Shown in pieces: positions 15,246 through 48,600 of a DNA stretch of 64,000 bases. Position numbers and translations under genes: made by a program. The notes beneath the pieces were generated by a model. The model was not told the origin of the DNA and made no database searches. It saw only the letters and a program-made list of their open reading frames with translations. Origin of the DNA: Lepidodermella squamata (taxonomy: Eukaryota; Animalia; Gastrotricha); assembly GCA_047495785.1 (NCBI GenBank), contig JBLDXI010000030.1, positions 186,001 through 250,000 on the forward strand, read 5' to 3'. How positions within the stretch are numbered: the stretch's first letter is position 1; each line of letters begins with the position of its first letter.

Positions 15246-15284
15246 ATTTATGTAAGTCTATAGTCAGACTTTGGAAATTCGGAA

Positions 15285-18617: not shown

Positions 18618-19843
18618 TTAAGGACCGAGCATCAAAGAGAAAAGCGTAATGTCGCAAATGATCACGAACACAACAGCGATAGTTGCTAAGGAATAGTCCA
18701 AAAATCGATGGAATGGCACGTTAAGTCGCTCGACGAAGCGATGTCTGAAACTTTTCGAGAATCCTGAACTGACGCAGGCGTAGCTCGTTATGAAAACAGC
18801 AATTACAAATTTCGTCGCAACCATGTAAACCAGATACACGGAATCAGAAGTTTTCGGCATCATTCCGAAAATCATAGTGAGAAAAACAGCGTATGATAGA
18901 ACAACAGTCACGCAGAACGCTGCTCTGTCACTTTTCAGAGGCTCGGCAATCAAACAGACGATTTGAAGAGCGAATAACGCTACTGTTGGGACGAAAATAT
19001 TGCAGATGTAATAGCTGCTCTTCCTTCGAAATCGCATGGTGAAATTAAGGTGGCTGTAAGGCCCTGAGGACTGCCGCAATACCGTTGTGTTGTAGATCAG
19101 CGGCTGCTCCAACGTCCAAATATCGGTGTCTGATATGAACAAATCGCGAACTGTTATATCGAGGCTGAAATCAGCTATTCGATACGTAACAGCCGTCGCG
19201 TACTCGTTCGGTTCAAAAATCATCGAACACTGCTGCACATCGAATGGGAATCGTCGATAAGCAAATGATGTGCACGAAACGTCGATACGATCGAAAATGT
19301 ATCGCATCACATTATTGCTTACAAATGGGAACACCCAGACTTTGTCATCAGGCCTGAAAGGTAAAAACCGTCGTAAATTAATACATCGTATTGCACAGAT
19401 CACCTCGGGGCTGGTCGCGGGGATTGATACGCTGTCATGTGGCACAGCTCAGGAGTCCAAATATCGCGAACTGGGACTAAAAACCCAATACTCCCGATGT
19501 CGTTGATTGAGCAAGCTTCCACTGGTAGCAGGTCGGTACAGCGAGGTATTTGGCAGGGTAGCGGCCATGCTTGAGTTTGCAGGACAACTAACGAAAGCCG
19601 CTGTTCTACGTCGTCGATCTCAACAAAGCGGTAAAGAGTGATCGAGATATCGACAGTTACTGGGGTCGTATTGTTAGTAGCAACTGCGAGCTCCGTCGGG
19701 AGGAAGCTCGACTTGATGGCTGGGCAGTAACGGCTAAAGTTGCTTTCCAACTGCTCGGAGTATGACATGTACACACCCTGACCTAGTGTCCCCCTCAAAA
19801 CGCTGACAAGCAACAGAAAAGCCGCTAGATCTGTAGCTTTCAT
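18618..19843 (-). CDS. Atypical Cys-loop ligand-gated ion channel subunit 3
   Basis: Two exons (intron 19354-19403); signal peptide, CTSFAYRRFPFDVQQC, 4 TM. Confidence 0.9.
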
Positions 19844-20049
19844 CTTTCAGTTATGCCTTGATTCGTGAATTGGCTATGGGTCTGCTGCCAGCCCCATCAA
19901 TAATTCAACTTTCGTTGAAATTCATTTTCATTTTAAAGAGACTGCTAGTGTTTCGGCCCGCCTCTTCACACTTAAAAAGGTAAATCAATATCACTTCACC
20001 GATGTTCCTATTTCTCGACATTTGTTTTGGCAAAATGACACAGTTCTCA

Positions 20050-21274
20050 TTAAGACAGCATAAGAGTGAAGAATGCTATGTCGCAGCAGGCAATCAAAGT
20101 GAAAGCGCTGCCAGCGATTAAAAAGTCCATAAAGCGGTGCAAATGCATCCTCCAGCGTTTTAGTATTCGCTGTTTGAAGGTTTTAGAAAAGCCTGATGCG
20201 ATGCAAACGTAACTAGTCATAATTACAGCTGCGATGAACTTAGCCACGACCATGTAGACCAGATATACTGTATCGGACGTTTTGGGCATCATTCCGAAAA
20301 TCAGGGTGAGAAACACTGCATAGGCTAGTACGACCGTTACGCAAAATGCTGAGCGGTCGATTTTCAGCGGCTCAGTGATGATGCATATGATTTGGAGGAT
20401 GAAGAGAGCGATGGTCGGGACGAAAATATTGCAGACGTAGTAGCTGCTTTTGCGTCGAAATCTCATGGTAAAATTAAGGTGGCTGAAAGCTCCCTCGCCC
20501 TGTTCGGATAGCGAAGCGTTGGATATGAGGGGCTCGACGAGTTTCCAAATGTCTGTCTCGGATATGAAGGAATCCCGAGCAGATATGTCGACTTCGAAGC
20601 CGGCGATTCGGTAGATGATCAGATTTGCATATTCATTCGGCTCTATGATCATCGAACATTGTTGTACATCAAATGGAAAATAGCGATACGAAAATGATGT
20701 GCAGGAAATGTCGAAGCGATCGAAAATAGAGCGGCTGGCGTCAGTGCTTTGTAACGGTTTGATCCAGACGTAATCCTCTGGTCTGAGAAAGCTGAGAAAT
20801 AGTCGATAGGTAATAGTAAACCCCGCATGCATACCTCTGTTTTGCAACTGGCGATCCGTAGGCAGTCATATGGACGATGTCTGGCGACCAGATTTCATTG
20901 ACTGGGATGCGGATGAGAATCTTACTTGCATCTTGAATAGCACAGGTTTCCCCCGGCAGCAAATCAGTGCACTGAGGGACAGGGCAGTTTAGGGGCCATG
21001 ACATGCCAAGAAGGAACACCAGTGAAAGCCGCTGTTGGATGTCGTCGATCTCCACGAATCGGTATAGAGATACTGAGATGTCAACAATGACTGGTTTCGA
21101 CTTATTCGTCGCCATAGCTTGTTCTGTTGGGAGGAAACTCGATCTAACTGCTGGGCAATATCGATAAAATTGAGTCTTGAGCTGTTCATAGTTTGAGGTC
21201 ATGTCAGCAGCTGCTTCTTCAACGAAGACGCATCTCAATATCAAAAGAACGCACAGCAAATATACTCGTAACAT
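20050..21274 (-). CDS. Atypical Cys-loop ligand-gated ion channel subunit 4
   Basis: Two exons (intron 20783-20834); signal peptide MLRVYLLCVLL, CTSFSYRYFPFDVQQC, 4 TM. Confidence 0.9.
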
Positions 21275-21580
21275 TTTCGAAGCTGTTTCCTTCAATCCAT
21301 AAGATAGAAATGACGGAGCCGAGAATTCCACACCAAAAGCTCGGTGCTAATAAAATGTCGATAACAAAGTGTGAACCATCTGTCAAATCTGTTTACCTTC
21401 TCGTCCAAAGTAACTAGGCAGCGTGCCTCGACCAAAAACAGTGTATGGGAGTGATTTTATTCGCTTGCGAAATCGAACAGCTTTGCTAGGAATGACTTAA
21501 CGTCGAACCATTTTACAATGTATCTAATCGTCTAATTGGCAAAGTATTCCCAACAAACTTTTAAAACGATATATCAGATT

Positions 21581-22802
21581 CTAAGGTGTCAGCATGAGAG
21601 TGAATAGAATCAAATCACAGATGGTAATAAAAGTCACAGCGATCGCAGCAATTACATAGTCTAAAAACCTGTGTAAAGGCATCTTCAAACGTGCCACCAT
21701 GCGATCCCTCATTCCCTGAGAAAAGCCCGAGCTTATACAGGCATAGGCTGTAATTACAACCGCCGTGACAAATTTGGCCGCTACCATGACAACCAGGTAA
21801 ACTATATCTGAAGTTTTAGGAATCATACCGAAAACAAGGGTCAGAATCACAGCGTAGGACAGAACAACCGTCACTCAAAATGCAGCTCTGTCATTTTTCA
21901 ATGGCTCAGCTATCAAACAGATTATTTGAAGTAGGAAAAGAGCGATCGTTGGCACGAAGACATTGCAAATGTAATAGCCGCTCTTCCGGCGGAATCTCAT
22001 GGTGAAATTAAGGTGGCTGAAAATCAAGGAACCGTCTAATTGTGCTGACAAGGATGTGTTATGAAGTAGGGGCTCGACTAGTGTCCATATATCAGCATCA
22101 GATATAAAGGTGTCTCTAACTGAAGAATCGACTGTAAAGCTGGCGATACGGTAGGTGACCTCCTTCGACTCTTCATTCGGCTCGAAAGTCATAGAACACT
22201 TTTGCGTATCGAATGGGAATCGGCGGTAGCTGAATTCAGTGCATGATATGTCGAAGCGGTCGAAAACGTATCGTGCGACGTTTAAATTCGATAACGGGTA
22301 CAACCAGGCGTTATCGGTAGACCTGGAAGTAAAAAGTTCACTTACAATTCGTAATTTAAACAACATTTTACCGAAGAGGGAGTATCGGGTGTGCGTATGC
22401 TGTCATATGAGAAAGTTCAGGGACCCAGACATCCTTCAGTGGAATATGGAACCCAATACCATTCGAGTTATTTACCGAGCATGCTTCCTCAGGCAACAAA
22501 TCACTGCATTTTGGGGTTGAGCAAGGAAGCTCCCATACCATTTTGATGACAAATACTAGCGACAGTCGCTGTTGCACGTCGTCGATCTCGACAAATCGGT
22601 ACATGATGATAGACACATTAACGATCAGTGGCTCAAAATAATTTGAGGCAATCGCTTTTTCGGTAGGCAGGTAATTCGATTTTATTGCTGGGCAGAACTG
22701 GTAGAAATTTCGTTTCATTTGGCCTGCGTAGGGTTCGGAAATGTCTGCACTTGTTGGAATTATCGCGAGCAAAGCACTGGCAACAATGATTGCTAGGAAC
22801 AT
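21581..22802 (-). pseudogene. Atypical Cys-loop channel subunit 5 with an in-frame TGA in M2
   Basis: Otherwise intact two-exon paralog. TGA at 21875-21877 replaces the Cys of DRAAFCVTVVLS that all six paralogs have. Confidence 0.75.
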
Positions 22803-23404
22803 TGCAGCAGGAAAATCCTTTAATATGTTATTCAAAGTGAATTTGATATTGGATAAAATGTTCAGCTTAGCCTTTGAGGGTGATGGACAGACAGCATGTG
22901 AGCATTGTGTTTTTTCTTACTGTGATATAGAGTTTTTAGAGCAGACTATTCGATCGCATGTATGTAATGAGAAGAAATGAAAGGAAATCGTTAAGACAGA
23001 ACATTGGAGATTGGAGCCGTCAGTTTTGAGACGATTGGTCCAGATGTTGGAACGACACATACCAAATCTCGGCTATTTAGCTGTACTTGTACTACATACT
23101 AGTACAATTACAGCAAGTATGTAGTATTATGTATGTAGTAGCTAGTATTATTGCCACTGCAAATGGCTGGCCATCAATACTGGGGGCCGGGTGAAACCCT
23201 TGTGTTGTCCGGTCACGTCGTTCACAAATCCGTCGAAACAGGGGCGTAACAAAGGGGGGCCAATGGGGCATCGGGTCCATTGCCTCTATTCACAAGTTAG
23301 CAAGTTGGTTGAAAGATCGTCAAGTTTTCGAACAAACCAAGGAAAAAATCGACTAAAAGCGTCACCAATAATTTAACCGTTGAAAATTTTCGGAAATTCG
23401 ACCG

Positions 23405-23884
23405 GCTGAGTTTGAAAGCTGGTCTCATTGTCTTCATTGTCAGTCTGATTTATATGGTGATATGGGCTTTAGTCAACACTCTCAAGTGCGAAAATGGCGC
23501 GCTGCAACAGGAACCGATCTACATTGAAAAGGAGGACGTTGACTGACGTTGGCTGAATACGCTTTGAAATGCTCGTCGCTTCATCAAAAAGAGTGGATGG
23601 CCGCTATTCTCGTAGCAAACCTCGTTGCTTCGGCTTGTGGATGCTATTTCGCCATTTTGTGTCACACTGCAAGTTTCATTAATCGCCATCCTAACAGCAA
23701 GTTTATTCTGAAAGCTGAGTTGAATTTCATCGCGATTTCTGTGGCGACTTGCCTCATAATTATCGCGGTTCCGGAGTCTCCCGTCACTGAACGTATTGTT
23801 ATTTCTGTGGCAGCTGTCTTCGTATCGATCTCCTCGACTGCGATTTTATACTTTTCGCATTGGAAAACGAAAACTCCGTCCTGA
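23405..23884 (+). pseudogene. 3' fragment of a class C GPCR (TM region)
   Basis: IYMVIWALVNTLKC...IYIEKED / YALKCSS...W...ATCLIII...ERIVISVAAVF aligns with the C-terminus of the 43224-44858 receptor. Frame is broken near 23540. Confidence 0.65.
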
Positions 23885-24034
23885 AAAAAACATATCCGAA
23901 TAGCCACTTGGATATATAGGCTAGGGTCGAGGTAGCTAACAGGAATTAATACTTTCACACCATTTTTTCATTTTCCGAGTTTTTTCCAAGAAATGTGTAG
24001 ATTTATTCAAATCTGCTCTCAAAGGATTAAAAAA

Positions 24035-25256
24035 CTAGCCTAAGGTCAGCATTAGAGTGAATAGAATTGAGTCACAGATGGTAATAACAATCACAGCGAT
24101 CGCAGCTACAACGTAGTCCAAAAATCTGTGTAACGGCATCTTCAAAGGAGACACCATGCGATCCCTCATTTTATCAGAAAAACCAGAACTTATACAGGCA
24201 TACGCTGTAATAACAACCGCCGTGACAAATTTAGCCGCTACCATGACAACCAAGTAAACAATATCTGAAGTTTTAGGAATCATACCGAAAACTAAGGTTA
24301 GAATCACCGCGTGAGAGAGTACAACTGTTACGCAAAACGCGGCTCTGTCATTTTTTAAAGGCTCGGCTATTAAGCAGATTATTTGAAGTAAGAACAGAGC
24401 GACAGTAGGCACAAAGACATTGCAAACGTAATAGCTGCTTTTCCGGCGAAATTTCATTTTGAAAGTTAAGCGACTGATAAGCAACGAACCCTCTTCTTCC
24501 GCGGATAGAGATGTATTGGAAATGAGAGGCTCGACTAGTGTCCATATATCCGTATCTGACATGAAGGTGTCTCTAACCGAGGAGTCGACCGTGAAGCGGG
24601 AAATTCGATAAGTGACATCCATCGACTGTTCATTGGCTTCGAAAGTCATCGAGCATTTTTGCGTATCGAATGGGAATCGGCGGTAGCTGAATTCAGTGCA
24701 CGATATGTCGAAGCGGTCGAAAACGTATCTTACGACGTTCAAATTCCAGAATGGGTAAAACCAGGCGTGATCAGTGGTCCTAATAATACATAATCCTGTA
24801 AAAATTGTTCAGCCTCGAGAAAATTCACCTTAAATGAAGGATTGGGTCTGTGTATGCTGTCATGTGATTAAGTTCAGGGTTCCAGACCTCATTCAGAGGG
24901 ATTAAAAATCCAATATTATCAATGCCTTTCATGGAGCAAGCTTCCACAGGCAGCAAATCACTGCATTTTGGGGGTAAGCAAGGCAGTTCCCATTCCATTT
25001 TGATTGCCATTACTAGCGACAGTCGTTGTTGCACGTCGTCTATCTCAACGAATCGGTACATTAAAATCGATACATTGACAATAAGTGGCTCAGAGTAATT
25101 TGAGGCTATCGCTTTTTCGGTAGGCAGGTAATTGGATTTTATAGCCGGGCAGAACTGGTAGAAATTTCGTTTCATTTGCCCGGCGTAAGGTTCGGAAATT
25201 TCTGCATTTGCTTGAAATCTCGCGAGCAAACCAACAGTTATGATAAAATGAAACAT
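24035..25256 (-). CDS. Atypical Cys-loop ligand-gated ion channel subunit 6
   Basis: Two exons (intron ~24780-24828); CTEFSYRRFPFDTQKC, 4 TM; close to subunits 5 and 7. Confidence 0.9.
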
Positions 25257-26026
25257 GGAGTAAAAAATTTAGTTCAATAGAGAACCATTGCGAGAAATCT
25301 GGGCCGTTGAGTCTGATTGCGATATCCACCTTCATTTCAGCTTAACTCAGCCGTGGCTAGGTATATGCCTAATCTTTTCTTTCTTGCATTGTTCTTATTG
25401 TTTGCGTTTGCTTCCATATCCCAATGACGGTACCAGAGCGTACTGAAACGAAAGAAATGGGTCTAAATAAATGGGCGGTTCCCGTCTGCGCCACTCATTT
25501 TGCGCGACACGCGAAACATGTAAATATATGTGTATTTTGCGCGACGCGTTCGCACGTGCACTACCTGCTACTGGTTAAGCGTTAAGCTGTCGCACTTGGT
25601 GGTGATGAGAAGTCTTAATCAGTTTAGTCACCCTAGTCATTGCTCAGCAAACACTTCATTTCTCTCAACAATCTTTAGAGTTTAGAATTTAGTAAATCTC
25701 CAGACCAGCCGCCAGCTGAAAGGGGCCGGCCGCCTAAGGCTAAGCATAGCTTGCTTCCGGTTCCGGTCGCTGAACGCCTGCTTAGTCCACCGCAAAGGAA
25801 GCCCGGAAGGCCGCCTGAGAAGATGCAGGAAGGAGTCACCCATGGCTTCTAATCGACAGGCGACAAGGAGAGGCCGAAGGTCAATACGATGAACCAATCG
25901 ATTCGAATCCCGGCCTTGCCAGGAAACAAATCAGAGTGCCGCTAATGCAGCAGGTACACCCGAAATCGTAATAACACCAAGTGAATCATCATAGTTTTCT
26001 TATAAATCAAACACTACAATTAATTT

Positions 26027-26278
26027 GTGTTTAGTCACCTCAACGGCGATCAGAGTTGTTCGGACCTCGCCTGCCAATTGTCGTGCGATATATCGAAACG
26101 GTTACGGCGGCATCATACCCTGTACCAAGGCCTCAAGTTTCTCGGGTCAAAACACCCCAAAACCGGCAAAATCTATCACCGCTGTTGGTGTAATAAAAGC
26201 AAGAGCTGCAGGGTCAAATTAGACGGTGTTTCTGAGTTGCCGCCAGACTTCGTCGACGGAGTAGTTGGAAAGCAGTGA
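26027..26278 (+). mobile_element. Probable FLYWCH-type zinc-finger fragment (Mutator-like element relic)
   Basis: LYQGLKF...KTGKIYHRCWCNKSKSCRVKL resembles the FLYWCH pattern L-x-x-G-Y-x-F...Y-W-R-C-x(n)-C-x-A-R-L. The distal His ligands are missing. Confidence 0.4.
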
Positions 26279-26463
26279 AAGCTGGAGTATCACTCGGTAT
26301 CACTCTGATTTATATGGTAATATGGGCTTTTAGTCGACTCTCTCAGTCGCGGAAATGTCGCTCTTCAACGAGGACCGATATAACTTGAAAAGGAGGCTTC
26401 GTATCGATCACCTCGACTGCGATTTTATACTTCTTGAATTTGAAAACGAAACCTCTGCCATGA
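26275..26463 (+). pseudogene. Internally deleted second copy of the class C GPCR 3' fragment
   Basis: Nucleotide similarity to 23413-23535 joined directly to 23819-23883 (CTGATTTATATGGT..., CTTCGTATCGATC-CCTCGACTGCGATTTTATACTT). Confidence 0.65.
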
Positions 26464-27023
26464 ATAAATAGAGAGGCAATGCTGAGAAACTGTCATTCCG
26501 CCCAATTCCATATAATTCCATTACGAGCCAACATGGGCCGATTGCGCAGAGCGCAGGGTAAATCCCATAGGCAGTGCATTGCTATTGCTCGGCAGCGTCG
26601 TTTTTTCTCAAGGAGTATTTACCCCTCTCATTTACCCCATTTACGACTACAAAATGAGTGTGGGTAAATACCCTGGGTAATCACGCCCTTTTCCGAGTAG
26701 AATAGCCGCAATTAACGCTAGTGATCCGGTGCCTCGTGTCTATCTATAGACACTTCACGGTCTGTCGTGTCTATCTATCAATAGATACTACTTCATACGT
26801 GCTAAGAGTGGCGCAGCAGCCTAGAGATGACGAAACCGCCCCGTCCCCGTTTCTAGTTTAACTTGCAAGCAATTGTCATGCTGCTAGTGAGAGGTTATAA
26901 GAATAATAAACTGGGCGATGGTGAGATTTAAAGCTTTTTCATTCTTTTTTCAACTTGGATTCAATATTCACCGAAATTCGCGATTTATACAAATCTGTTC
27001 TCATTGGATTCTAAAAAAGCAGA

Positions 27024-28240
27024 CTATGGGTACAGCATTAGAGTGAATAGGATCACGTCACAGCAGAAAATAACAATCACAGCGATTGCAGCTATAAGAT
27101 AGTCTAGAAATCTGTGTAAAGGCATTCTCAAGCATGGCACCATGCGAATCCTCATTTTATCAGAAAAACCAGAACTGATACAGGCATACGCTGTAATAAC
27201 AACCGCCGCGAGAAATTTAGCTGCTACCATGACAACCAAGTAAACGATATCTGAGGTTTTGGGAATCATACCGAAAACAAGGGTCAGAATCACAGCGTAG
27301 GATAGAACAACTGTCACACAAAACGCGGCCCTATCATTCTTCAAAGGCTCAGCTATCAAACAGATTATTTGAAGCAAGAACAGTGCGATCGTTGGCACGA
27401 AAACATTGCAAATGTAATACCCGCTCTTCCGGCGGAATCTCATAGTAAACGTAAGGCGGCTGAACACCAACCCGTCCGATTCTGCTGACAGAGATGTGTT
27501 TTGAATGAGAGGCTCGACTAATGTCCATTTATCAGTATCAGATATGAAGGTGTCTCGAACTGACGCGTCGACCGTGAAGCTAGCGATTCGATATATAACA
27601 TCCATGGATTGTTCATTCGGTTCGAAAATCATCGAGCATTTTTGCGTATCGAATGGGAATCGGCGGTAGCTGAATTCAGTGCAGGATATGTCGAAGCGAT
27701 CGAAAACGAATCGTATAACGTTTAAATTTGCAAATGGGTACAACCACGCGTGATCAGTAATATAACAAAATAATTCCTGTAAACAATCGTTAGTCCCAAT
27801 GAAATTAACCGTAAATGCAGTATTGGGTCTGTATAAGCTGTCAAATGATTAAGTTCGGGGTTCCAGATCTCGTTAATAAAAGGGATCAAGAATCCGAGTT
27901 TATCTTGGTCTTTTATCGAGCATGCTTCCACAGGTAACAAATCACTGCATTTCGGGACTTTGCAAGGCAGTTCCCATTCTATTTTCATGAGCAATACTAG
28001 GGACAGTCGCTGTTGCACGTCGTCTATCTCAACGAATCGGTACATGACGATAGATACATTGACAAGCAGTGGCTCAGAGTAATTGGAGGCGATCGCCTTT
28101 TCCGTAGGGAGGTAATTCGATTTTATGGCTGGGCAGAACTGATTGAAATTTCGTTTCATTTGGCCAGCATAGGATTCGGAAATTTCTGCACGTGACGAAA
28201 CCGTAGCAAGCAAAGCAACTGTTACGATAAAGTTAAACAT
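27024..28240 (-). CDS. Atypical Cys-loop ligand-gated ion channel subunit 7
   Basis: Two exons with an intron near 27760-27809 (acceptor uncertain); CTEFSYRRFPFDTQKC, 4 TM. Confidence 0.85.
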
Positions 28241-30058
28241 TGCGGAAGACAAAATCGTGCACCTGAGCCGTTGAAGAGTCCAATTGCGATATCCAGCTTC
28301 ATTTCAACTGAACTCAGACGTTGCCAGGTATTTGCGTGTTTATTTTTTTCTTTATTGTTCTTTTTATTTGCTTTCGCTCCTATATCATGATGACGGTGCC
28401 AGAACGTACTGAAACGATAAGCAATAGAAGGTAATGTCTAAATACATAAATGAGGTTCTATCACTAAATTTGAGAGCGCGCCCACCTAATTAAATGCAAA
28501 CAGGCGTTGCTAAATCTTCGCGCCACCTAAATAAGGAAATAATGAAATAATGAATAATGAAGAGCTTTCATGGCGACAGTACATGTATACAATTAAAAGC
28601 CCATTCATCTTCTTACTTCTAGTGGTTTGTCAGAAAGTCTCATACCAAGCTAACAAAAAAGTATTCAATAGCCACTGAAAAAGGAACGTGCTACTGAGTG
28701 GATAGAAACAAATTAGGTATGTATACTTGGTCTTCAGTCTGTATACGCTACCTTGTGAGCTGAACATTCGAAGAGCGGGGTTCGTCAGGGCGATACAGTT
28801 TATTTCTTAGAGGACCGCCATTCTATTGCTACCGCATTTGGGCGACATTTCGCCCTTCATAGGAGAGCTCTTTGTTGTTCAGGACTGAACAAATATCGGA
28901 AAATGAAAAATGATGACCCCTTGATGATAATCCCAGAGCATAAATAGAGTAGAACTGGTGCTAGACTGGTGCCATTTACCGTTTTTCTCATGATAAATAC
29001 CAACTACCAACTAGGGTAATTCGTCGCGTTGTGTTTGAAAGGGTCGAAATGATCTATCCAAATAATGATGGGCTGAGCGAAAGCCATGAGATCAATAAAA
29101 ACGGAGGTTATTTGCTAATTGCCATTGGATGCAACGGTTTCCGAGAGGGAAGTAATAATAGACATACTGCCACTTGGCGTGGCGATAATACAACACTGTG
29201 TCAATATTTTTCACATTGAAACACAAATATGTATTTTTTCATATTTAAAATATCCATCAAAAAAGGTTTGAATGGCTACAAAAGTAATCATGTGCATACC
29301 ACATGCATAATTAGATAGATCATCTCGAGAGGAATAAACCTATGTTGGGCCATCTTCGGTTTTCATATTAAATTTCAGCAACAATAAAATCTTGGCGACC
29401 ATTTCAAACGTAACGCGACGAATTATTTCAGCATGAAATTAAAAGGAAAATTTTCAGTATTTTTGGAGAATCTTTCACTAAAAGTTGCGAATTCTTTTTT
29501 CCATTAAAAGGAACGCCTACTCTTCGCAACGGACTTGAGGCGTTTGAAAGCCGAATGAAAATAAGATTTCATTCTAATAATTGACTGAGTTTATATCTCC
29601 AGTTAAGCCCTTCACTTTCGCTGCGGGCGATTCTCCGCGGAATTTTCCCCTGTTTTCCTAGGAGTATTTCAAGTCACCTCCGCGGAAAATAGGTCTCACG
29701 TGCGCACTTGCGCTTAAAACCGCTGTTTCTGTTTTGAGCGCGGCTGCCATTGTTTACCGATTACGCAACCAACGTATTGTCAAATCTTCGCGTCACGTGT
29801 CCATGTCACGACAAAATTACGCAAAATAAAGTGATAAAAGTAAAGAAAAACAGTTTTATTCTAGATTTTCTTCGCCGAGTTTACTGATTCAAAATCAACA
29901 ATTGTTCACAATTTATCGGTGCCATCAATCATGATTGGGAATTGAAACAGATAGTGATCAAAGATCAAAGAGAAATATATAAAGGTTTTGGTTACCAAAC
30001 AATAACAAATGAAAACAGTAATATGGCGATATCAGCGAGCATTTCGCTTGCAAAACGA

Positions 30059-31043
30059 TTAGTAGTTGCCGGCGCTTTTTTTTGCAGCCGCAGCTCTCTT
30101 GCGTTTACAATCGCGTACATTCGTACAAATGCCGGCGCGGACAATGCGAAATAAATCACAATTTTTGATAACTAGGCGAACAATTTCATTGATCAACTCG
30201 TCATCCTCGAGCGCGGACGAGAACCCGAGTGCCGCCGCTTTCTTTTCCAACATTTCAATCAAATTTCTAGAAAATCCGTACGCATCTCGCTTTTCAGCGT
30301 GCAATAAATCGCACAGTTTTTTCTTCTCAACAGAATAGGCACCAGCGAGTAAAACAACCTGCGTTTGGTTCCGGCGAACAGCATTTTGATGATCCGCGCT
30401 TGAGCTCGTTTCCGTCAACGTGCGCGCGCTCTGTTGGCGAGTCTTCGCGCCAGCTGGTGAAATTGCGCGACGTGAACGCAGGTGCGCGCCGCGCCCTGCG
30501 ATTGGCGAGGCGGGTGTGGGCGGAGCGGAGGGCAGCGATGTGGCGTGCTGGCGCGGCGTAGAAGCCACCGGTCGTGCTGGCTTTGAAACTCGGCGGCGGC
30601 GGCATGTTGACTGAAGTCGTACGTGTCATGAGCCGACAACGTAGCCGTAGACGTCGAAGGTGCATTCTTAGCAGTTTTAGCCGTTTTTCCAGGGACAAAC
30701 TTCGGAGCCTTGTGGATATAGTCGTGGTAATCCACTACTCGTTGGGCGCTGCAAGACACGGCAGCAAGAACCTATTCAAAGACAGAATTGAAAAAATATG
30801 AGATTAAAAAGATAAAATATTGAAAAGGAAAAAAATCCAGATCACAAGCTAGATAAAAAATGCAGAAAAACAAACCTTATTGTTTGGTGGTGATTCGCTT
30901 TGATCCGATTCGCTTTCTTCCGAAACGCTTTCTTCTGATTCCGATACCGATTTAGTGCGCTGTTTCGCCAGCTCGAGAGCTCTGCGGTGAAATTCGCCAA
31001 CTTTCGAGCCGAGGAATTTATGAAATATATTATTTGAAGCCAT
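30059..31043 (-). CDS. Cargo gene A: acidic/low-complexity protein with a probable C-terminal BEN-like domain, one apparent frameshift
   Basis: Exon 31043-30876, GT-AG intron 30875-30772, then exon 2. A one-base shift near 30583 (EFQ/KPARPV) joins the C-terminal frame FSRNLIEML...ALEDDELINEIVRLV...FRIVRAGICTNVRDCKRK. Confidence 0.5.
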
Positions 31044-31361
31044 TTCTAAAATAAAAAAAGCAAAATTCTCAATATTTTGTAAATTTATTGATGGAAAAAC
31101 AAATGAGAGCTAGTTTGATCAGCGTTGATATTTGGGTGAATCAACTCAGCTTTTTGAGAAGAATTCAGGCCGAATTTATAAAAATGCGAAATTTTCATTT
31201 TAGCATCAATCATTCTCAAGTATGCTGGTTTAATTTTCCCATCGAACGCTGGTTTTTGCAATTACAAGAGTTTTAGCGATTTGAAACGTGAAACGCACGA
31301 CCATAACAGAACAACATAACATCGAGATGGCATAAAAAAAATTCAAACGCCGCAAATGTAA

Positions 31362-32393
31362 CTAGTTTTTTTTGCCGCGGCGTGTGGGTTTCGGTGTTGC
31401 TTTAGCTACGACATCTCCAATCGCAGCTAAATATGCCCACCAAAATTTCAGTACTTTCCATAAGCTTTTCAGAATGTTCCAAGCCGGAAAAATAATGCGC
31501 CCGAAATAGGCTAATTGTGTCATAAAAATCCACCTCAAAAAAATGGCGATCATGTACTCGCCAAAGAAATATTTCGCAGCGATTCCTTGTTTCGACCGGA
31601 TAAATAGATGAGACGAGCATTCACTCAGAAATAATAATGCAAGAGAAATCAGATGAATTTTCCTGCGGAAAATCAGCAGAAAAGCGAGGAAAAAAAGATA
31701 AAAAGAACCTCGATACCGGTAAAACCCAGCTTCCAATTCAGAGCTATAGATCGTTTGAGAAGACAGAACAGTACAAAATGTTGATTGCTTCAAAAATGAG
31801 ATTAAATCCAGCCAGATTCCATCCAACGGAACAAAATCGGCCAATGATTTCAAGGCAAAACTACTAAGTTCAAGAAAAGGATTGTTTTCATCCTTGAAGT
31901 AAGTAACGAAACTACAAATGTCTCTAGCGTCTGAAAGCAAAAGTGCCCATTGCATGAGCTCGTGAGGCTCCAAAGATTTCGTGATACAAGATATCTGATT
32001 AGAAACGTTGGCGCCTAATGCAATCGGACATGATAATTCTTTGGAAGAATTTCTGTCCTTCAACCAGCATTTTAGCATGGTCTCGGCAAAATTGCCCCAA
32101 GAAACGATATTATTTGCACAATACGACTTCGCTTTTTCCAACCAGCTCTTGTAACAAGGCGTGTTTTTTGATTGGATGCGCTCGAAGGCATCGCGACCCG
32201 CGATAACTTGAACCGGGGGTACTTCGGTTATTTCCAGGGCGCAACTCATTGCCCACAGAACAGAGAAGCAAACAACAAACGACAACTTTTCTGACTTTCC
32301 CTTGAGCATGTTGAGCATGAGCATGAGCGGGTTGACTCGAAATAATATCGCCAAGCGTTTTCGATGGCGCCCGATGCCAACATTATATACCAT
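31362..32393 (-). CDS. Cargo gene B: GEX1/Brambleberry/Kar5-like membrane protein
   Basis: Signal-like segment (LSFVVCFSVLWAMSCA), six-Cys domain C-x11-C-x16-C-x12-C-x13-C-x23-C (FAETMLKCWLKD, SDARDICSF), about 3 C-terminal TM helices and a basic tail. The true start may be a downstream Met near 32310. Confidence 0.68.
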   Translation of the reverse strand: MVYNVGIGRHRKRLAILFRVNPLMLMLNMLKGKSEKLSFVVCFSVLWAMSCALEITEVPPVQVIAGRDAFERIQSKNTPCYKSWLEKAKSYCANNIVSWGNFAETMLKCWLKDRNSSKELSCPIALGANVSNQISCITKSLEPHELMQWALLLSDARDICSFVTYFKDENNPFLELSSFALKSLADFVPLDGIWLDLISFLKQSTFCTVLSSQTIYSSELEAGFYRYRGSFYLFFLAFLLIFRRKIHLISLALLFLSECSSHLFIRSKQGIAAKYFFGEYMIAIFLRWIFMTQLAYFGRIIFPAWNILKSLWKVLKFWWAYLAAIGDVVAKATPKPTRRGKKN

Positions 32394-32713
32394 CCATTTC
32401 TGCGGCTCCTTGAAACGCCCTGGTGATCGTCACGCATACAATTTTTCAATTGCTTTCAATGCTTTTATTTCTTTCAATTGTTACCTTCAATTCAACCACT
32501 CGCGCAGCAGTTCGAGCGCAACGAGCACGAGTGTGTGCAATCCTGGCGCGCATGGGGCTGTGAAGTGTGACTAAATTATTTCGCGCGCGCGCGCGCACCT
32601 GCGGAAATTTTGCGCGCGTCAACGGTAAACGGTAATTACAGGGCGTCCTGTGCGACATTGGCGCGGCCGAGAGGAAGTAGCCTTCAGCCGAGGCATTCGC
32701 AGTTTTATTTTAG

Positions 32714-32991
32714 ATGAAAAATGAGAAATGCCGCCGCGACTTGGTGTTATGCAGTTTTAGCCGAGACTGCCAAACCGCAAATGCGGCAACAACAAGAAGA
32801 ATCGAGCTTGAAAAAGGAAGTAAAAGATTATAAATCGTACTCATTCAATTTTGCTTTTATCATTTCGATCATGTTTTCTCTCGAAACTTCAGATTATGAG
32901 ATGAGCTACGAAGAGGGCGTGGGTGTTGTTACTCGCGGCGCCGTTCGTTTTTTCATCTCATCAACGTTGCCGCCGACACCGCCGGCTACGT

Positions 32992-33032
<41 letters not shown>

Positions 33033-33677
33033 GCCACGACCACGGCTGCGACTGCGACTACGACTACGACAGCGACCTCACCACCGGCAAGCAGGCCGAC
33101 AATTACGCGAGCACCGTCGAGTTTCTGGCCAACATCGCCATCAACTCCGGTCTCAACGATCGCCGATGTTAACAGTCTGATCGCGCTTGCCGCCAGTATT
33201 TCAGCTCTGGCTGTCTACATTCTCGTCGCTGCTGTAGCATTGTTCTGCCTCTGGCTGTGGTGCTTCAAGAGGCCTCGGGCGTCAGCAGTCAACATTGAGG
33301 CGCCACCTCCAAGGCCGCCGCCGCCGCCCCCACCGTGTCCGCCGTGCCGCGAGCAAGTCGAACCGTGTCGGGTAGAAGCCGTCGTCGAGCAGCAACAACG
33401 CGAGGCTCAGCCGCAAGTTCAAGTGGCTGCTGCGGCCGCAGCTCCGCCTCAAGAAGCAGCAGCTCCGCCTCAAGAAGCAGCCGGCCCTGCGCCTGTGGTA
33501 CCGAATGCCGCTGTTGCTGTTGCTGTCCCTCAAGTTGAAGTCGCACCGCCGCCTCCGCCACCGCCTTTTCACCCCGCGGCCCCTGCACCGCCGTTGTTTG
33601 TTTTTCAAGGCGCTAACGCGCCGCCGGAAAATCAGCAGCGCCCCAGAAGGGGGCGGCCAAAGAAGACGCAAGCGTGA
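32714..33677 (+). CDS. Cargo gene C: single-pass membrane protein with Thr-rich stalk, Pro/Ala/Gln-rich tail and C-terminal AT-hook
   Basis: (ACCACG)n Thr run, TM ALAVYILVAAVALFCLWLWCF followed by KRPR, and terminal RPRRGRPKK. An alternative 5' model (ATG 32714, intron 32820-32892) is in frame with the ORF-track frame. Confidence 0.7.
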
Positions 33678-36600
33678 ACACCAGTGTTCCAGCATGAACC
33701 GGCCCTTTTCAGGGCCACAAGTCCTTGCAACAGTGTTTCCCTAGTTTTTTCCAGTCATTTACGGAGATATTTTGAAATAAACATCTTGGCATTTTTCTCG
33801 TTGCTGTTTTATATTTCTAGCTGTTTTGCAGACTTGCCGCTGCTGGCTCCGCCGTTTTGTGTGTGTGCTGGGTGACAATGCCGGGGGGAACCCCCATACT
33901 GTCACCGTTTGTGAGTTGACAAGTTGTTTGTTTGTTTGTATGCCGCCAATGTGTTCACAATCTATGCACGCCTTTCGCGCACGCTGTTTATTATATCAAA
34001 TAGTTTTGGCTTTTGGGTCTAAATGCGATTGCTGATATTCTTGCGTGGTTATATGACAATTGAGCAACGGCAATTCGGAATTCGGCAAAAAAAGAAATGA
34101 AAGTTCTTTGTGATTTTTGAGACGTCCCGTTCGTTGAAGGCCATGGGTCCGGAATGAGCACTCTTAGGGTCGCTCGTTGGGGTCTCTTGAGGACAGCTCG
34201 GTAGCGATTGGTGCAGTCTTGCTGACATTCCCAATCTACCACTTTTGGCTTTTGTAACACGATGAAGTCGTCGGCCACCGTTGGGGCAGGGCGTCATTGA
34301 TAAATCGTGGTCGACCCGAGTGGAGATCTAACTCATGCCCATCGATCTTGACGCTCAATGCCCAGCAGACAGCTATCCACTGAACTACTGTGTGCCCAAT
34401 TCCACAATATTTGTTTTATTCGATCGAAAACGACAACTCGGCCAACGGCAGTGAAAATCCAACATACCCTTGAGCGACAATTTGGCAGAAGACACCACCC
34501 GTGCCGCCAGCCGCCAGTGTGCGCACAGTCTATGCACGCCTGTCGTCTACTCCACTAATTATTCTGTTTTGGCTTTTTGATCTAAAACTAGTTAACCACC
34601 CTTTACATTACAGCCGTATCGTACTGGGAGCAAGCTACGTAACGAAGTTGGTGGTAGATTGGAGACCGTCTCACGAGCGGTCATTTCATTACCTCGATCC
34701 TGGCGCCCCATTTTGAGATGCGATATTACTAACCTTTTTTTTATAGAAGGTAGACGCTCTAACAGCCAAACATGAAGCGTGGCAAGTGGCAACTACTCAG
34801 GAGTCTTAAAAGGTACTGGCCGAAGCGTTCGGCCGGCCCTATGAAGCTCGGGAATGGCGGCGTCCTTGCGCTGTCTGTCGATGTTGCTCATAGGTTACTC
34901 GATCAGTTGTTGAAACTCATTACGCCGTTGACCGAATCTGTTGCTCTTAGGCTCTTGGGCTGCTGCAGCCTGCAGTAGGATGCGTCCGAACTTGATCTGC
35001 GACGAACTGAGTCTCTACAACTGCCAGTACCGCTGAGTTTTCCGTTAGCCAGCGCTTGGTTCAATTTAGCATACACTTTGACTCGCCTATGGCTTTCTAC
35101 AACTCCCGGGTTCGATGGTTGTAGAAACTTTCTAACCGTAGCACCACCGTAGTTCTTACCGTAGTACCGTAGTGAACACGTTGCCGTTTAGTACGGTACC
35201 GTAGGTGGACAAAATGATAAGTGACAGTAGCAGATGAGATTTGAAACTACCGCGCCGCAGTGCTTTACCGTAGTTTCTACCGTAGTCGTGACTTAGAACT
35301 AAGATACATATGTACGGTATGCATGGTGCTAGGGGTGTCACCTCTTTTGTACATAATGTGCACAACTGGTCTCCTCCGTTTACCCAGCACCTTTGGCACG
35401 GCGCAGGACGCCATCTTGAGAGTCCGTCCTACAACTACTACGCCCCCGAGCACTGCTGTCGCTTGCCAGGCGAGTTTGTGTGGCGCATTCAACGCCGCTA
35501 TGAGGTAACCTTGGGAGGTAACGCCGTTCGCTAAGTGGTGCCGTTGCGTGAGGTTATGGAAAGGTTGCTGTGAATCTTGGTCGTGGCATGCATAGAGATT
35601 ACAGCAGGCTCGATTCAGGCCTACCCCGATAGTTTACAGGTAGAACTACCATCATTGTTCTCGTCAGTCTCAAAGGTTCCCCCCGGCGCTACTGCGGCAG
35701 CTTTGCTGCTGCTGTTGCCAATTATCTGATATTTATCGCTTGTTTAGCCAGGTGTAGTCAAGTGCAGTCAAGTGCCAACATAACGCGCGCTCCATTGTTG
35801 CGCATATTTTGAAATAATAGCTGAGTGGTTCACAATAACGGGCGAGATCGAAACGCGCGAGCAGCGTTGCGCGTCTCATTCTTCGAGTTGCGCGCGCCAA
35901 TTTTCAACAGCCTCTGATTTTCGTAACAACATAAAGCTTTTTCAACCCATGAAAATCACGACGACCAGCGGAACCTAAATTCTACTCTACCGCTGATTCG
36001 ATTTCCTCAAGTACTAGGTTTGATTAGGTCTTAGAACTGTTTTCGAAATTAGAATTATATTATGTCCAACCGCAATATCTTAGAAATAGTTATTTTCCAA
36101 GACATTTGGTATGTAAAGGTGAGCCCCGAAAGCCAACATAGTCCGGTATTTCCAGCAGGATAAGTGAAAAAATACGGTATTTAATTTCGTCTTCAGATTT
36201 TTTGGCGCGGCAGCTGAGAAAAATTTTACGTTTTTTGTATCGACAGCCTCATCCTAGTTGATTCGACCCTTGAAGGAATAGAATTTGCAAAGAAACCAAC
36301 CAGATTTGTGCTTGGAAAGAACCTGCATTGTAGGCCGGGTTTCGTATGGTCAAAGTCCAAAGCATGATTCACGCTACTGAAATAATGCAGCTAGTTTTTA
36401 GAATAATTTTTCAAATTCTCCAGATTCTCCAGATTATTGAAGAGTATCTTGAGAATGCTGGGTTATTTTTTACAGTGGAATTTCTAAAATAGTTTGAAAA
36501 ATCTGAAAAATTTGAAAAATAAGGCTACGTATATAACGTTACAGAGTAGTGCTATTTTTAACCGTCACGCGCTATTTTTAGACTTGTACTTTGACCCTGC

Positions 36601-36706
36601 AAACCCGGCCTACAATGTGTATCAAATTATAGAGGGGATTCCGTCGGGGAAAAATCAAAACTTGAAGATAAATTTGGCATTTTTTTATTGACAGAAATAG
36701 AAAAAT

Positions 36707-39138
36707 ATGCCTCATCACATAATTTATCATCCTTTAGCTACCAAATTATTTGTAATGTCTGACGTCGTCGTCGACGACGACTGGATCGATCAGTTATTAG
36801 AGCCGCCGTTGGTATTCGACTTTCTTGGTACGCGGCGGCTTCTCGTTCAACCTGATTCTCAACTGGACCCGTATGGCGTATTCAAGCTCATTTTCGACGA
36901 AGTGATGGTGAAAATGATTTGCGAAGAAACCAACGACCAGGCCGAAAAGAAGATAGAAGCAAACACTCTGCCCAATGCTCGAATTTTGGCTTGGAAAAAT
37001 CTGGTTCCAGAGGAATTCAGAGTTTGGACTGGAATTTGTCTGCTGATGACATTAGTCCAAAAGTCAACGTTCAACAAATATTGGTCAACGGAGCCGCTAA
37101 CCGCAACTCCATCGTTCGCCACGCTCATGTCTCGTGATCGATTTTTGCTGATTTTATCCTGCCTTCATTTTGTTAATAACGACTTGAAAGAGCAGCTCGA
37201 ACCCAACGACAGGCTCTGGAAGGTAGGTTATAAAAATATATTCTCGATTTTTTTTACTCGTTGAACATTTTTTGAAGACTTTTCGTTTTTTTTTAATTTA
37301 ATCTATTTTTTTCTAATCAACAGATCCGGCCTATTCTCAACCACTTTCAAGATCGCATGCGATCGATCTATTCGCCGCACAGATACCTCTCAATCGATGA
37401 GCAAAACCTGTTGTTCCGCGGGCGCCTCGGGTTCAAAGTTTACATAAAAAACAAGCGCCATAAATTTGGAATCAAGGTAAATAATTTGCTTAGAAATGTC
37501 GTAAAATGAAAAAAATGATTTCGCCAGAAAACGAAATTCGCGAATTTTATTTTCGACTTGGAAATCCTAGCTAATTTGCCAAAAATACCAAAAGCGATTT
37601 TGACTCGCTGGAATTTTTTTCGCCGATTATTTCTTTTTTTTCATCGCAGATCTACATGTTGTGTGAATCTGAAACCGGTATCGCGTTACGCTTTCATGTT
37701 TACACAGCGTCTTCGTGCGAGCAAGACGGAATCATAGCCGGCCCTGGTCACACCAGATCGGTTGTTGAGGGCCTCATGAGAGATTTTCTTGATCAGGGAT
37801 TTTCCTTGTTCATGGACAATTTCTACAACTGTGTCGAATTAGCGAAGTTCCTCTTCAACCGTCTAACTTATCTAACAGGTAAACAAAAATTTTCCTTTTG
37901 CGTCCATAAAAATCTCAACCCATCACACAAATTTACGTCAACATTTTATATTGAATAGGCACTCTGAATCCCAAGCGAAAGGGAAATCCTGAACTTGTTG
38001 TACAACATAAACTCCAGCGCAATGAAATGGTGTGGCTGAGAAGCGGCCCTGTTTATGTTTCCAAATGGAAGGACAAGCGCGATGTTTTGATGCTATCAAC
38101 TGAATTTCCGCCAGTATGGGCCAACCCACCCACCAGTCGCAAAACAGCTTCTATCGAGAAGTACCTGTCGACCAACGCCGACGAGTCGCATATCAACGTT
38201 GCGGGCGACGAAAATTCAGCGAACGCCAGCTTCGAACCGCTGCAAGAAGAGGCGGTTGTCGAACCGAATTTTGCGGGTCACCAGGCCGACGAAAGCTCAT
38301 CTTCGTTTGAAGCGGGTGCAGACTCATCTGATGACGAGATTGTGGAAGACGATAAGAGCAGCGATGAGGATGGGTCATCTTCAGGCTCGGAATGCGGCGA
38401 GGAAGAGGCGCCTAGCCGAGTTGATTCAAGGAAAAAGCCGGGCCCGGCCGCTGCCGCGCGCAAACGCAAGTTGCCGGATCAGACCGGGAAAGGCGCGTCT
38501 AAAAACGGGCCGAAAGCGAAAAACACGCGCCAAGCACGTCGCCCTCCCCAAGATCGGCTTCCTAAGCCGCTGCACGTCCTCATCTACAACATTCTGATGA
38601 ATGGAGTGGATAAAAATGACCAAAAGGTTTGTTGAATTTCCATTGGTTTCGTTTTGATGCTGTCATTATCCATCGATTCATTCGATTCAGTTTTTTTCGG
38701 TTTTAATTTTTATTACGTCATTTGCAGGTATCTTATTACGAATTTCTGAGGAAGTCGCTGAAATGGTACCGAAAGGTGTACTTTCGCACTCTCGAGTACA
38801 TCTTGTTGAACGCTTACGAGATCTACAAGTTCAACACCGGCATCAAAATAACGCTTGAAGATTTTCGACTCGCCGTGATCAAAGGCCTCATTGGCGAGAA
38901 ATGGGATGTGATCGCTGATCAATTCAAGCCAAAACCGGCGACTCGAACTGAAGAAAAGCCGTACCACGAGCTGACCGCTATCGCGCCAAAGTCAACTCGC
39001 GTGTGCCTACAGTGCGGGAGCAAAGCCTCGAAGGAATGCAGATTCTGCCCCAAGGGCAAAAATGGCTTTTACCCTGCCTTTCACGACAGTTGCACCGGCA
39101 AATGGCATCATGTCCACTATTACGGCTATTCCCTATAG
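36707..39138 (+). CDS. piggyBac transposase (PGBD4-like DDD), 5 exons, apparently intact
   Basis: Exons 36707(or 36755)-37222, 37324-37476, 37650-37878, 37959-38626 and 38728-39138 splice in frame. Motifs: MSRDRF, catalytic SIDE, FMDNFY and GVDKNDQ, plus WKDKRDVLMLST, KWYRK and a C-terminal CxxC...CxxC...H..C domain. Confidence 0.93.
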
Positions 39139-39869
39139 GTAAGAGTCACAAGGTACAACATTTTCGTAAATTCGCGCTATAGCTAAATCTCATAGGTTGT
39201 GGTACGTGTGGGCTAATTATCGCGCACACATACTTAGGTGTGCGTAAAAAATGGCCCGCGCGGTGCCATTACGACAAGAAGTTACACGTCTATTTTTGAA
39301 AGAAATGTCATTTTAGCTATAACGATTATTTCGAAAGCCGGAGGGGCGGCTGCGCGGCGCCGTGCGTGATGAAAATGTTGGATTTTTTGCCATCGTTTTT
39401 TATTGAGGCGTGTCTTGAACGCCTCCGTTCTTGATAAGCGTTCTACTTCCAACTGTTAAATAACATCTATTTTTCAGCTTGTGTCTGCAGATCATAGCGT
39501 CAATTCTTTACTACAATTTCCCGTTGTCGACTTCCCTCTCGAGAAAGTTGGCTCAGTGCTTACGAGAAGAAAAATGAATAAATTATTTCGTTTTTCGGAA
39601 ATTATTTTCAACTGCTCATGTTTTTGTTGATGTTTTTACTTCGAAAAACCACTGCAAGAGAATAAAAGGCGTTTTTTTATGTGTTGAAACATGCGTTAAT
39701 TAAATGCGCGAGAATTCCGCGGAGTGTGCGTGCCGCGCGGTGAAAATCCTCCGCGGAGAGCAGTAATTACTGCCCGCCGCAGTGAAAGTGTTAATGTATA
39801 TCATCCTGTTTTGGCAAAACTAGATGATTCTCCTGCTGTTGGCAGCTTCAACCTTACTTCAAACCTCTT

Positions 39870-45688: not shown

Positions 45689-48600
45689 ATGCTTTTGCGC
45701 TTGCTTCTGCCCGTTTTGGCTGTGCTTTGCATCTTCGAGAAAGGTTTGTCTATTTTGATAAGTTTTCGTGCGCGATTTCAAATTTCTCATTTCCAAGCCG
45801 AGTCTGCCTGTCCAGCATTTCGAACTTACAACATGCAGTACCAGTACATGAATGGCTCTGAAGCTCTCAATCAAACAAGCTGGCAAACCATAACAGAGGC
45901 TGATGTAGCCAAGCACACTAACACTGGTGATGTCATTCAACTTCTGAGCAGAGATGGGAAGATATCGAGACAACACCGTTGCCAAAGCAACGGCGCTTGG
46001 GATCCCACAACAACAGAATGCATTAATGGATGTAAGCTTGCTTCAAATCAAAGTGATTTACTTAATAAACGGGATTGTTCAGACCAATGTCCCAATGGAG
46101 GCACATGCGATAAAGAAGTGTGCACGTGTCGCTATGGTTTCCAAGGCCGCTATTGCGAGCAACGTGAGTTCGGAAGGAAATAGTGCCAAAGTCATTTTAA
46201 AATTTATTTCTCAGCATTGAAGTCGTGCGTCCCGTCATGTGGAAACGGAACGTGCTTGAATTCATATACTTGCAAATGCCCCGACAATGCATTCGGTCCG
46301 CAATGCAGCTATACGACGGACAAGAAAATAACAAGTGGCAGTGCGTTCATCTCGCCGTCTACTACAATCCGAGGTGTCAAAAGCGGCGTTATCGATGGGT
46401 ACTACGTTTCTGGGCAGGGAGCAGTTCAGTGGAGAATTTTCGCAGACACGGGCTACGTCATACAATTCTCCCGTATGTCTCTAACTGTTGTTAACTCGAA
46501 CCCAGCCGTAGCATTAGATGACGTGGCGCGGTTGGAAATGTACGATTTCGCGATTTCTGGACCTGCTATCCGTTTTTCACAACTGGGGCCGAAAGACTTG
46601 CAATCCGGAAAAATCGTTACCGCCACCAGTCAAACTTCCGCGGTCTTGATATGGCTAACATCAACATTCGAACAGTTTTTCATTCGATACGAGATTTATT
46701 TCGAACAAGTAGCAAGGAGCCCAACACAGACAGGGTCGCAGACTTTGCCAGCAATATCAAATTGGTGCGAGACCCTGACAACTATCAACTGGGCCTTTGA
46801 CGAAATCCTGATCGGTAGCTCGCCGGTGGACATAACTGATTCCTTTCCGGGCAGGTGCACTTGGCGAATCATGATTCCACCAGACAGCGTGTTACAATAC
46901 GCGTTTCTCAACTACACGATCATAGGCGATACTGGCATGTACCTTGCTATGCAGGCAATCAATTACGACACGGGCGACATTTTTTCAAACCCTTTTCTGT
47001 TGGATAAATCGACATCGAATACAACTGTTGTATTGGATGGAAAGCTAGTCCCTCTACCTTATTCGAGCTCGAACCGTGAAATTCAGGTGGTTTATATGCC
47101 TCGCGGCAGTAGCAAGGTTAGAAATTATGGTTTCTACGCTAAATTCAAACTGGGTAAGGTTATATTCGGGGCAAAACGCGTGATTTTCAACTTATTTTAG
47201 TAAAAACATGCCAGAGTCCGTGTCAAAATGACGGCTACTGTATCTACAGCAACAATTGCTTATGCAAGTCGCCTTTTCACAACCCGATATGCCAGTGGAA
47301 CATGGTGGGAAACGGTGAGTTATTGGCTTGGCGAAATAAAAATTATTCAGTATATTTTTATCCAAGGGTTTTCGATAAATAACGAAGTCTGTCAGCCATT
47401 TTTCCAAGCTGGTCGAAATAACTTGACGGGAGTTACCACGCGAGGCATGATAGCCGTGAAAACAACTCCGACCAGTGGTTTCTGTCAATGGTTGATTTCA
47501 ACTACCCCTGGCAATGCTATCCAGTGACGCCTTAAATCTTCTTTAATTTCCACCTTGAACATCTCTTTTTATTCAGGCTAGAATACATCAGCCTCAAAGC
47601 TATCGACGTCCTCGGAAATCTACAGAAAGACGGTAACTAACCTTTGTTGTATAATGCGTGGAGTCTATTTGAGTTAATTCACAGCTGTACTAACTGCGCA
47701 TGAAATACCGGATGGTCAATCATCAACTGAGAGGTTACTATGGATAAATCCAACAACGAATACCACATCGCTGAAAATTGTTAATGCTACAACGAATACG
47801 CTGCTTCTAGTGCTGAGGTACAAAGTCGGGCTTATCATTCAGTTCAGCACTGATTTCTACCCTGGTAAGGCTTGTGTCTAAATCTTCCAATCCCTCATAA
47901 ACACATTTATTCCAGCGCGAATTCCGAGCCGGTCGAAGCGTGCGGTGCCTGATCTACTGCCGGTTACATCTAGCTGTAAGGTTCTGACCATAGTTGACTG
48001 GCCAATGGAATCTGGTCTCATCGGCAAGTGGCCTCCTCAGAAGACCAATTTAGAATTATGCCAATGGCTGATTCGCTACCCGTTCGCCAACAGTTTTTCG
48101 TATGAAACCCTGAATCTTTCTTTGAATCGTTTCGGGAGCTTGACCATGCTACGTCGCGATGCGAACTACAGCTGGACGTCTGTCGTGAGCTCTGCTACGA
48201 ACGACGTCAACATGACTACGGCTCAGCCTGTTCAACAACTAATCCCTTCGTTGGATACTGACAACACCGAAGTGATGATTGTATTGAGCGCGAGTTATTC
48301 AGACCTTGCTGATGCAGAGACGGGGTTCCAGATGAAAATGTATCTCCCGACTACAACCACGTCTACCACAACAACAACAACAACAACTACTACTACTACT
48401 ACTGCTAGTACTCCTTCTACAAGTACTGTAACTACTACAACAACAAAGCAAAATTCGACAACGAAATCGAACTCAACGGCTGTTGCAAGATCTTCGATTC
48501 AGAACTCTACTACTGGTGCCTCAACGGAGGGATCATCCACCGCTATCAATACGACTCCGATTCCGACCACTCAGCCGGAACCCACGGACCCGCCTTCGAC

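Follow-up and report, generated by a model that had tools for sequence, protein, structure and literature searches.

The present analysis concerns a probable, unusually large piggyBac-type transposon in the genome of an animal, Lepidodermella squamata. The window, i.e., the whole stretch of DNA that was analyzed, comprises 64 kb, and all positions given below are window coordinates. The matched ends of the element, at 29613 and 39790, span 10,178 bp, within which a spliced transposase gene occupies the right-hand part, and three further genes, together with noncoding DNA, the remainder. The element sits between two arrays of Cys-loop receptor genes, and the window also includes ANF-receptor and ankyrin genes.

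Ends of the Element

The two ends and their junctions comprise the following features.

29603-29606: the TTAA nearest to the left tip, 6 bp off, with GCCCTT (29607-29612) in between
29613-29626, plus strand: left terminal inverted repeat (TIR), CACTTTCGCTGCGG, with GCGGGC at tip positions 11-16
29633-29686, plus strand: left subterminal region, with two copies of CTCCGCGGA, at 29633-29641 and 29678-29686
39716-39773, minus strand: right subterminal region, with CTCCGCGGA at 39716-39724 and the palindrome CTCCGCGGAG at 39749-39758
39777-39790, minus strand: right TIR, CACTTTCACTGCGG, identical to the left TIR at 13 of 14 positions
39791-39794: TTAA on the right side, immediately next to the right tip

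The 14-nt TIR CACTTTCRCTGCGG occurs at exactly two sites in the 64 kb, 29613-29626 on the plus strand and 39777-39790 on the minus strand, where chance would give 0.05. The motif CTCCGCGGA is found at five sites in the window (chance expectation 0.28), all of them at most 75 nt from the two tips. Counted inward, the palindromic core TCCGCGGA occupies tip positions 22-29 and 67-74 at the left end and 34-41 and 68-75 at the right end, and GCGG falls at tip positions 11-14 in both ends alike, such that the motif spacing of the two ends matches. At tip positions 18-31 of the right end (39760-39773), the 14 bp of GCAGTAATTACTGC form a further palindrome, without mismatch. The coordinates 29613-39790, between which the initial annotation had placed matching TIRs and subterminal repeats, are exact.

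TTAA abuts the right tip only. As the left TTAA lies 6 bp from its tip, the target-site duplication is imperfect. The GCCCTT spacer could have its source in an aborted excision that was repaired by end joining, or in a small insertion.

No further tips or copies of CTCCGCGGA were found in the interior of the element, where the degenerate internal ends amount to 3-mismatch matches at chance level only. It follows that this copy lacks a second left end upstream of the transposase, near 36.7 kb, and that the left end does not belong to a separate small element.

A scan of viral sequences for the end signature returned 0 matches. The sole match in metagenomes (Ga0214921_10026157, positions 1167-1201) lies within an apparent bacterial protein-coding region and is considered a chance match.

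Transposase

36707-39138, plus strand: piggyBac transposase gene, with exons at 36707-37222, 37324-37476, 37650-37878, 37959-38626, and 38728-39138

The five exons are separated by GT-AG introns of 101, 173, 80, and 101 nt and, once spliced, give a single open frame of 658 residues. Exons 1-3 pass the cut-off of the Pfam model PF13843 (DDE_Tnp_1_7) with E values of 2.5e-24, 4.6e-11, and 4.4e-06, respectively, covering profile positions 1-231, and exon 4 extends the match to position 279, weakly (E 0.057, 13.1 bits vs a cut-off of 22.4). The closest solved relative is piggyBat (PDB 9c0f), with an E value of 1.1e-16 for exon 1, and residues 79-500 of this structure are collinear with exons 1, 2, 3, and 5. 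Exon 1 had 0 matches in a length-limited protein search, and no relatives of it were found among the GTDB genomes and IMG/VR.

The first of the three catalytic aspartates (DDD), D197 in the motif SIDEQ, is aligned to D268 of the T. ni piggyBac (IDEQ), and the second, D279 in FMDNFY, to the YMDNYY motif of piggyBat, while the third, D517 in GVDKNDQ, is assigned by motif alone. The PF13843 match, the open 658-residue frame, and these three residues confirm the earlier proposal of an intact, spliced DDD transposase. The same proposal had the ends enclosing this gene together with three unrelated ones, and three non-transposase coding regions are indeed found between them, as described below.

A low-complexity stretch of about 150 residues, acidic and then basic, is located between D279 and D517 (38061-38510, in exon 4), and the spacing of the second and third aspartates is 238 residues here vs 101 in the T. 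ni piggyBac. From residue 613 onward, the C-terminal region is rich in cysteine and histidine, with the pattern C-x2-C-x7-C-x2-C ... H-x2-C ... HH-x-H. The zinc-ribbon Pfam matches of this region are weak, and it does not align to the Cys-rich domain (CRD) of piggyBat.

Four introns and a long insertion separating D279 from D517 are atypical of active piggyBacs, and these features, like the left junction without an abutting TTAA, would suit a fixed, immobilized locus whose transposase has been domesticated or is becoming so, the neighboring genes being merely co-resident. Around domesticated PGBD genes, TIRs and subterminal repeats are usually lost, whereas both TIRs and all of the subterminal palindromes are kept here, and the DDD residues are intact. 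We consider such a domesticated locus quite unlikely.

Interior to the Left of the Transposase

The part of the element that lies to the left of the transposase contains the following features.

30059-31042, minus strand: cargo gene 1, of uncertain exon structure, with an open frame of 169 codons at 30059-30568
31362-32393, minus strand: cargo gene 2, an open reading frame (ORF) of 343 residues, called ORF343 below
32721-33677, plus strand: cargo gene 3, an ORF of 318 residues, called ORF318 below, divergent from gene 2
33696-33740, plus strand: histone-type 3′ stem-loop, GGCCCTTTTCAGGGCC at 33701-33716, followed by ACAA
33741-36325: noncoding stretch of about 2.6 kb, devoid of credible ORFs and domains
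36326-36617: nested insert of 292 bp, resembling a miniature inverted-repeat transposable element (MITE), with 17-bp perfect TIRs CATTGTAGGCCGGGTTT

The approximately 7 kb from the left end to the transposase is not transposon machinery, and no transposon domain was found in the three cargo ORFs. Three genes lie in it, all of them compact, lineage-specific, and seemingly intact. The ORFs of these genes (30059-30568, minus; 31362-32393, minus; 32721-33677, plus) have a positive score with the host codon table in the stated frame only, at 0.11-0.19 bits per codon, and the transposase exons and the host genes score similarly. Neither the GC content at third codon positions nor the codon usage separates the cargo, the transposase, and the host genes.

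In the region from 33.7 to 36.7 kb, the small ORFs contain no credible Pfam domain. The noncoding stretch includes a duplication of about 80 bp (33942-34023 and 34510-34586), the two segments being 74% identical and 568 bp apart, with no similarity extending around them. The MITE-like insert, which shows no clear target-site duplication, is followed at a distance of 90 bp by the ATG of the transposase. A tRNA-like feature considered at 34300-34400 is supported by neither ARAGORN nor Rfam.

Some of these observations would also be expected if the two ends had separate histories, namely, if the left end were the solo end of a degraded copy and the transposase with the right end a 5′-truncated autonomous copy that happens to lie 7 kb away, with three ordinary, lineage-specific genes of the host in between. 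A rearrangement at the left end would give a disrupted TTAA junction such as the one observed, the codon usage of the cargo is indistinguishable from that of the host genes, the noncoding stretch and the nested MITE look like ordinary intergenic DNA, and the 64-kb window shows just this one copy. However, this explanation requires two independent truncations in the correct mutual orientation, with no other remnant of the family nearby. Moreover, the subterminal motifs are intact at both ends, the TIRs agree at 13 of 14 positions, and the tandem receptor arrays, which make up the remainder of the window, show no relation to the interior. We regard it as a serious but rather unlikely account of the locus.

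The Three Cargo Genes

In gene 1, the coding signal is clear for the last ca. 100 codons only (30062-30361), with a score of 0.19 vs 0.02 for the N-terminal part. This C-terminal part is predicted to form a five-helix domain followed by a basic tail, KRKRAAAAKK, that resembles a nuclear localization signal (NLS). A possible first exon starts with an ATG at 31042 and reaches a GT donor near 30876, and no in-frame ATG precedes the helical domain within the 169-codon open frame. The gene had initially been annotated as a BEN-like DNA binder. This assignment finds no support, since the BEN domain (PF10523) gives no Pfam match in gene 1 even at E ≤ 10, and a Foldseek search of the PDB with the AlphaFold2 (AF2) model of the C-terminal part, which has a predicted local distance difference test (pLDDT) score of 65, returned a best E value of 2 and no BEN entry. 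The predicted product of gene 1 is a small helical protein with a basic tail.

Gene 2 encodes what is predicted to be a multipass membrane protein of the secretory pathway with a six-cysteine lumenal domain. By hydropathy only, ORF343 has a signal-peptide-like hydrophobic segment at residues 37-53, preceded by basic residues. The six cysteines are at positions 80, 92, 109, 122, 136, and 160, and the sequence also contains two N-glycosylation sequons and a basic tail, TRRGKKN. The C-terminal hydropathy peaks, at residues 233-249, 249-265, and 281-297 and, more weakly, 314-330, correspond to three to four helices, the first of which is separated from the last cysteine by 67 residues. In this intervening region no coiled coil is evident, and AF2 gives short helices there with pLDDT < 50. 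The AF2 run on ORF343, performed without an alignment, resulted in a pLDDT of 51, too poor for a fold search.

The architecture described in the literature for Kar5, GEX1, and Brambleberry combines a signal peptide and a six-cysteine domain with coiled coils and two or three membrane helices, and a GEX1/Brambleberry-like identity had been suggested for ORF343. The architecture is the sole basis of that suggestion. ORF343 has no match to the Tht1/KAR5 Pfam model PF04163 even at E ≤ 10, a model that is mainly fungal, such that a distant membership is still conceivable. Homologues of ORF343 numbered 0 both in a word-indexed search and in a full phmmer search of 1.84 billion representative proteins, and sequence comparison of the cargo ORFs with the PDB gave nothing.

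The DNA of gene 3 includes a 12-nt periodic repeat. ORF318 contains a poly-Thr, mucin-like stretch, one membrane span at about residues 150-182 with basic residues on its C-terminal side, and a Pro/Ala-rich tail that is predicted to face the cytoplasm or the nucleoplasm. The protein ends in an AT-hook core, RPRRGRPKK, at residues 310-318 (a motif match only). The description of this protein as a membrane-anchored AT-hook is confirmed by the single predicted span and the C-terminal core PRRGRPKK.

Downstream of ORF318, a stem-loop starts 23 nt past the stop codon and matches the histone 3′ consensus exactly. It also matches the Rfam model RF00032, though below the gathering score (26.1 bits, E 6.6e-4 over 10.4 kb), and GGCYCTTTTCAGRGCC is matched once in the 64-kb window, by the stem-loop at 33701-33716. 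In animals, the histone stem-loop forms the 3′ end of replication-dependent histone mRNAs. ORF318 itself shows no histone fold by Pfam at E ≤ 10, and no U7 gene is present in the 64-kb window. ORF318 is probably expressed in the manner of a replication-dependent histone gene, with putative SLBP-dependent 3′ ends and a coupling to S phase or to the early embryo.

The above features of the three genes can be combined into a coherent nuclear-envelope and chromatin module, composed of Kar5/GEX1/Brambleberry-type, AT-hook, and BEN-type proteins, which would tether the DNA of the element or bias its transmission. ORF343 agrees with Kar5 and GEX1 in its predicted signal peptide, its six lumenal cysteines, and its membrane helices toward the C terminus, the membrane span, AT-hook tail, and histone-type 3′ end of ORF318 fit a little, and the basic tail of gene 1 is NLS-like. 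Nevertheless, two of the three underlying annotations fail the tests applied to them, as neither Tht1/KAR5 nor BEN gives a Pfam match at E ≤ 10. Furthermore, no homologues were found, Foldseek retrieves no BEN fold, and ORF343 is short, with no evident coiled coil. A module of this kind appears very unlikely, and the tethering of the element to the nuclear envelope by its cargo is speculation. We give a similarly slim chance to the more specific scenario of an autonomous piggyBac family that mobilizes the three genes as a module, in which an SLBP-dependent AT-hook protein and a Kar5-like protein would act at the nuclear envelope in S phase or early cleavage, to the benefit of the element. Such a family would be the earliest known case of a piggyBac with a cargo module of whole, non-viral genes, and ORF318 would be a non-histone metazoan gene on the histone 3′ end pathway.

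Genomic Surroundings and Scope of the Searches

The absence of homologues has to be read against the representation of the host. As a control, the 752-residue ANF-receptor ORF of the host (8227-10485, minus strand) was submitted to a search of 5.8 billion proteins and returned 0 matches at E ≤ 1e-5. Because this host gene is also without matches, the lack of homologues for the cargo is uninformative on whether it originates from the host or from the element. Exact look-up of ten window ORFs and one flanking ORF likewise found no record in the protein collection. The host lineage seems to be very poorly represented among public protein data.

Self-comparison of the window reveals no similarity between the interior of the element and the flanking receptor arrays, and neither a paralogous empty site nor an interrupted feature is found in the 64 kb.

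The array to the left of the element consists of diverged tandem paralogues of Cys-loop receptors, with five units on the minus strand at 15282-28425, spaced by 1.4-3.0 kb. The second array, at 47945-61548, is composed of a duplicated unit of ~6.2-6.7 kb on the plus strand. Some of the receptor units have long Ser/Thr-rich repeat ORFs upstream (53195-53864). An unrelated MITE-like unit is located at 29017-29425, some 190 bp beyond the left tip of the element, with 37-nt inverted repeats that are 84% complementary and 335 nt apart.

Interpretation and Significance

Taken together, we find it reasonably probable that the locus is one piggyBat-like element of the piggyBac superfamily, 10,178 bp in length, with about 7 kb of acquired non-transposon DNA that includes three intact genes. 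If the element works as piggyBac and piggyBat do, the Cys/His-rich domains of the transposase would bind the TCCGCGGA palindromes, the catalytic core would engage the CAC tips, and the element would cut and paste at TTAA. The extra DNA would have been acquired inside the element, such that the copy carries it as cargo.

A number of points weigh against this interpretation. The single copy seen in the 64-kb window gives no sign that the 10-kb unit ever moved in one piece. At the left, the junction reads TTAA, GCCCTT, and tip, in place of the expected TTAA followed by the tip. The model of gene 1 is uncertain, and the stem-loop, at 26.1 bits, is below the Rfam gathering score of 34. The nested MITE and the 2.6 kb of noncoding DNA suggest that the copy is not young. 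Finally, whole-gene cargo of this size is, according to the literature, unusual for natural cut-and-paste elements.

It is the rarity of whole genes in natural eukaryotic cut-and-paste transposons that gives the locus its interest. If intact genes of cellular type have indeed been moved by a piggyBac-type element, the mobilization of cargo would reach a new class of animal transposons. The locus would then provide a natural example of large-cargo piggyBac transposition. A literature search found no published precedent for a piggyBac whose cargo consists of whole, non-viral genes, Teratorn being the known large relative. The use of the histone stem-loop by a transposon-borne membrane/AT-hook gene would constitute an unexpected path to S-phase or embryonic expression.

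Comparison with Known Systems

Two of the cargo genes can be compared with known cellular systems. Metazoan replication-dependent histone mRNAs are described in the literature as ending in a 3′ stem-loop. ORF318 shares with the corresponding genes a consensus stem-loop, located 23 nt past the stop codon and followed by ACAA, and it differs from them in that the ORF upstream of the stem-loop has no histone fold. In the case of ORF343, the signal peptide, the six-cysteine N-terminal lumenal region, and the C-terminal membrane helices, all of them predicted, are as in Kar5, Tht1, GEX1, and Brambleberry, whereas sequence and profile similarity to these proteins are lacking. ORF343 is also far shorter, with 343 residues compared to the 504 of Kar5, and a coiled coil is, at low confidence, not evident.

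Among transposons, the locus can be compared with piggyBat, an element of about 2.6 kb with one ORF. The locus resembles it in the CAC tips, in the GCGG(G) from bp 11 with palindromes thereafter, and in the C-terminal Cys/His-rich region of the transposase, here recognized by its residue pattern. It differs in its length of 10.2 kb, the four introns of the transposase, the low-complexity insertion of ~150 residues, and the three extra genes, and also in that its palindromes are TCCGCGGA and not those of piggyBat itself. According to the published work on piggyBat, its ends carry GCGGGA at bp 11-16 and, after this motif, a palindrome to which dimers of the C-terminal CRD bind.

With respect to the cargo, the locus can be compared with Teratorn, reported as a piggyBac-like transposon of teleosts that is fused to an alloherpesvirus and measures 41-182 kb. 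There, a piggyBac-type transposase and TIRs mobilize a large block of non-transposon genes, as they may do here. Unlike Teratorn, which contains a recognizable herpesvirus genome, the present locus has about 4 kb of cargo, whose three orphan genes bear no hallmark of a virus. The locus is also similar to the products of gene capture by Pack-MULEs and Helitrons, in that a DNA transposon holds sequences that are not needed for its transposition. Those elements contain mostly gene fragments and are usually nonautonomous, whereas here three apparently full-length ORFs are accompanied by the element's own transposase.

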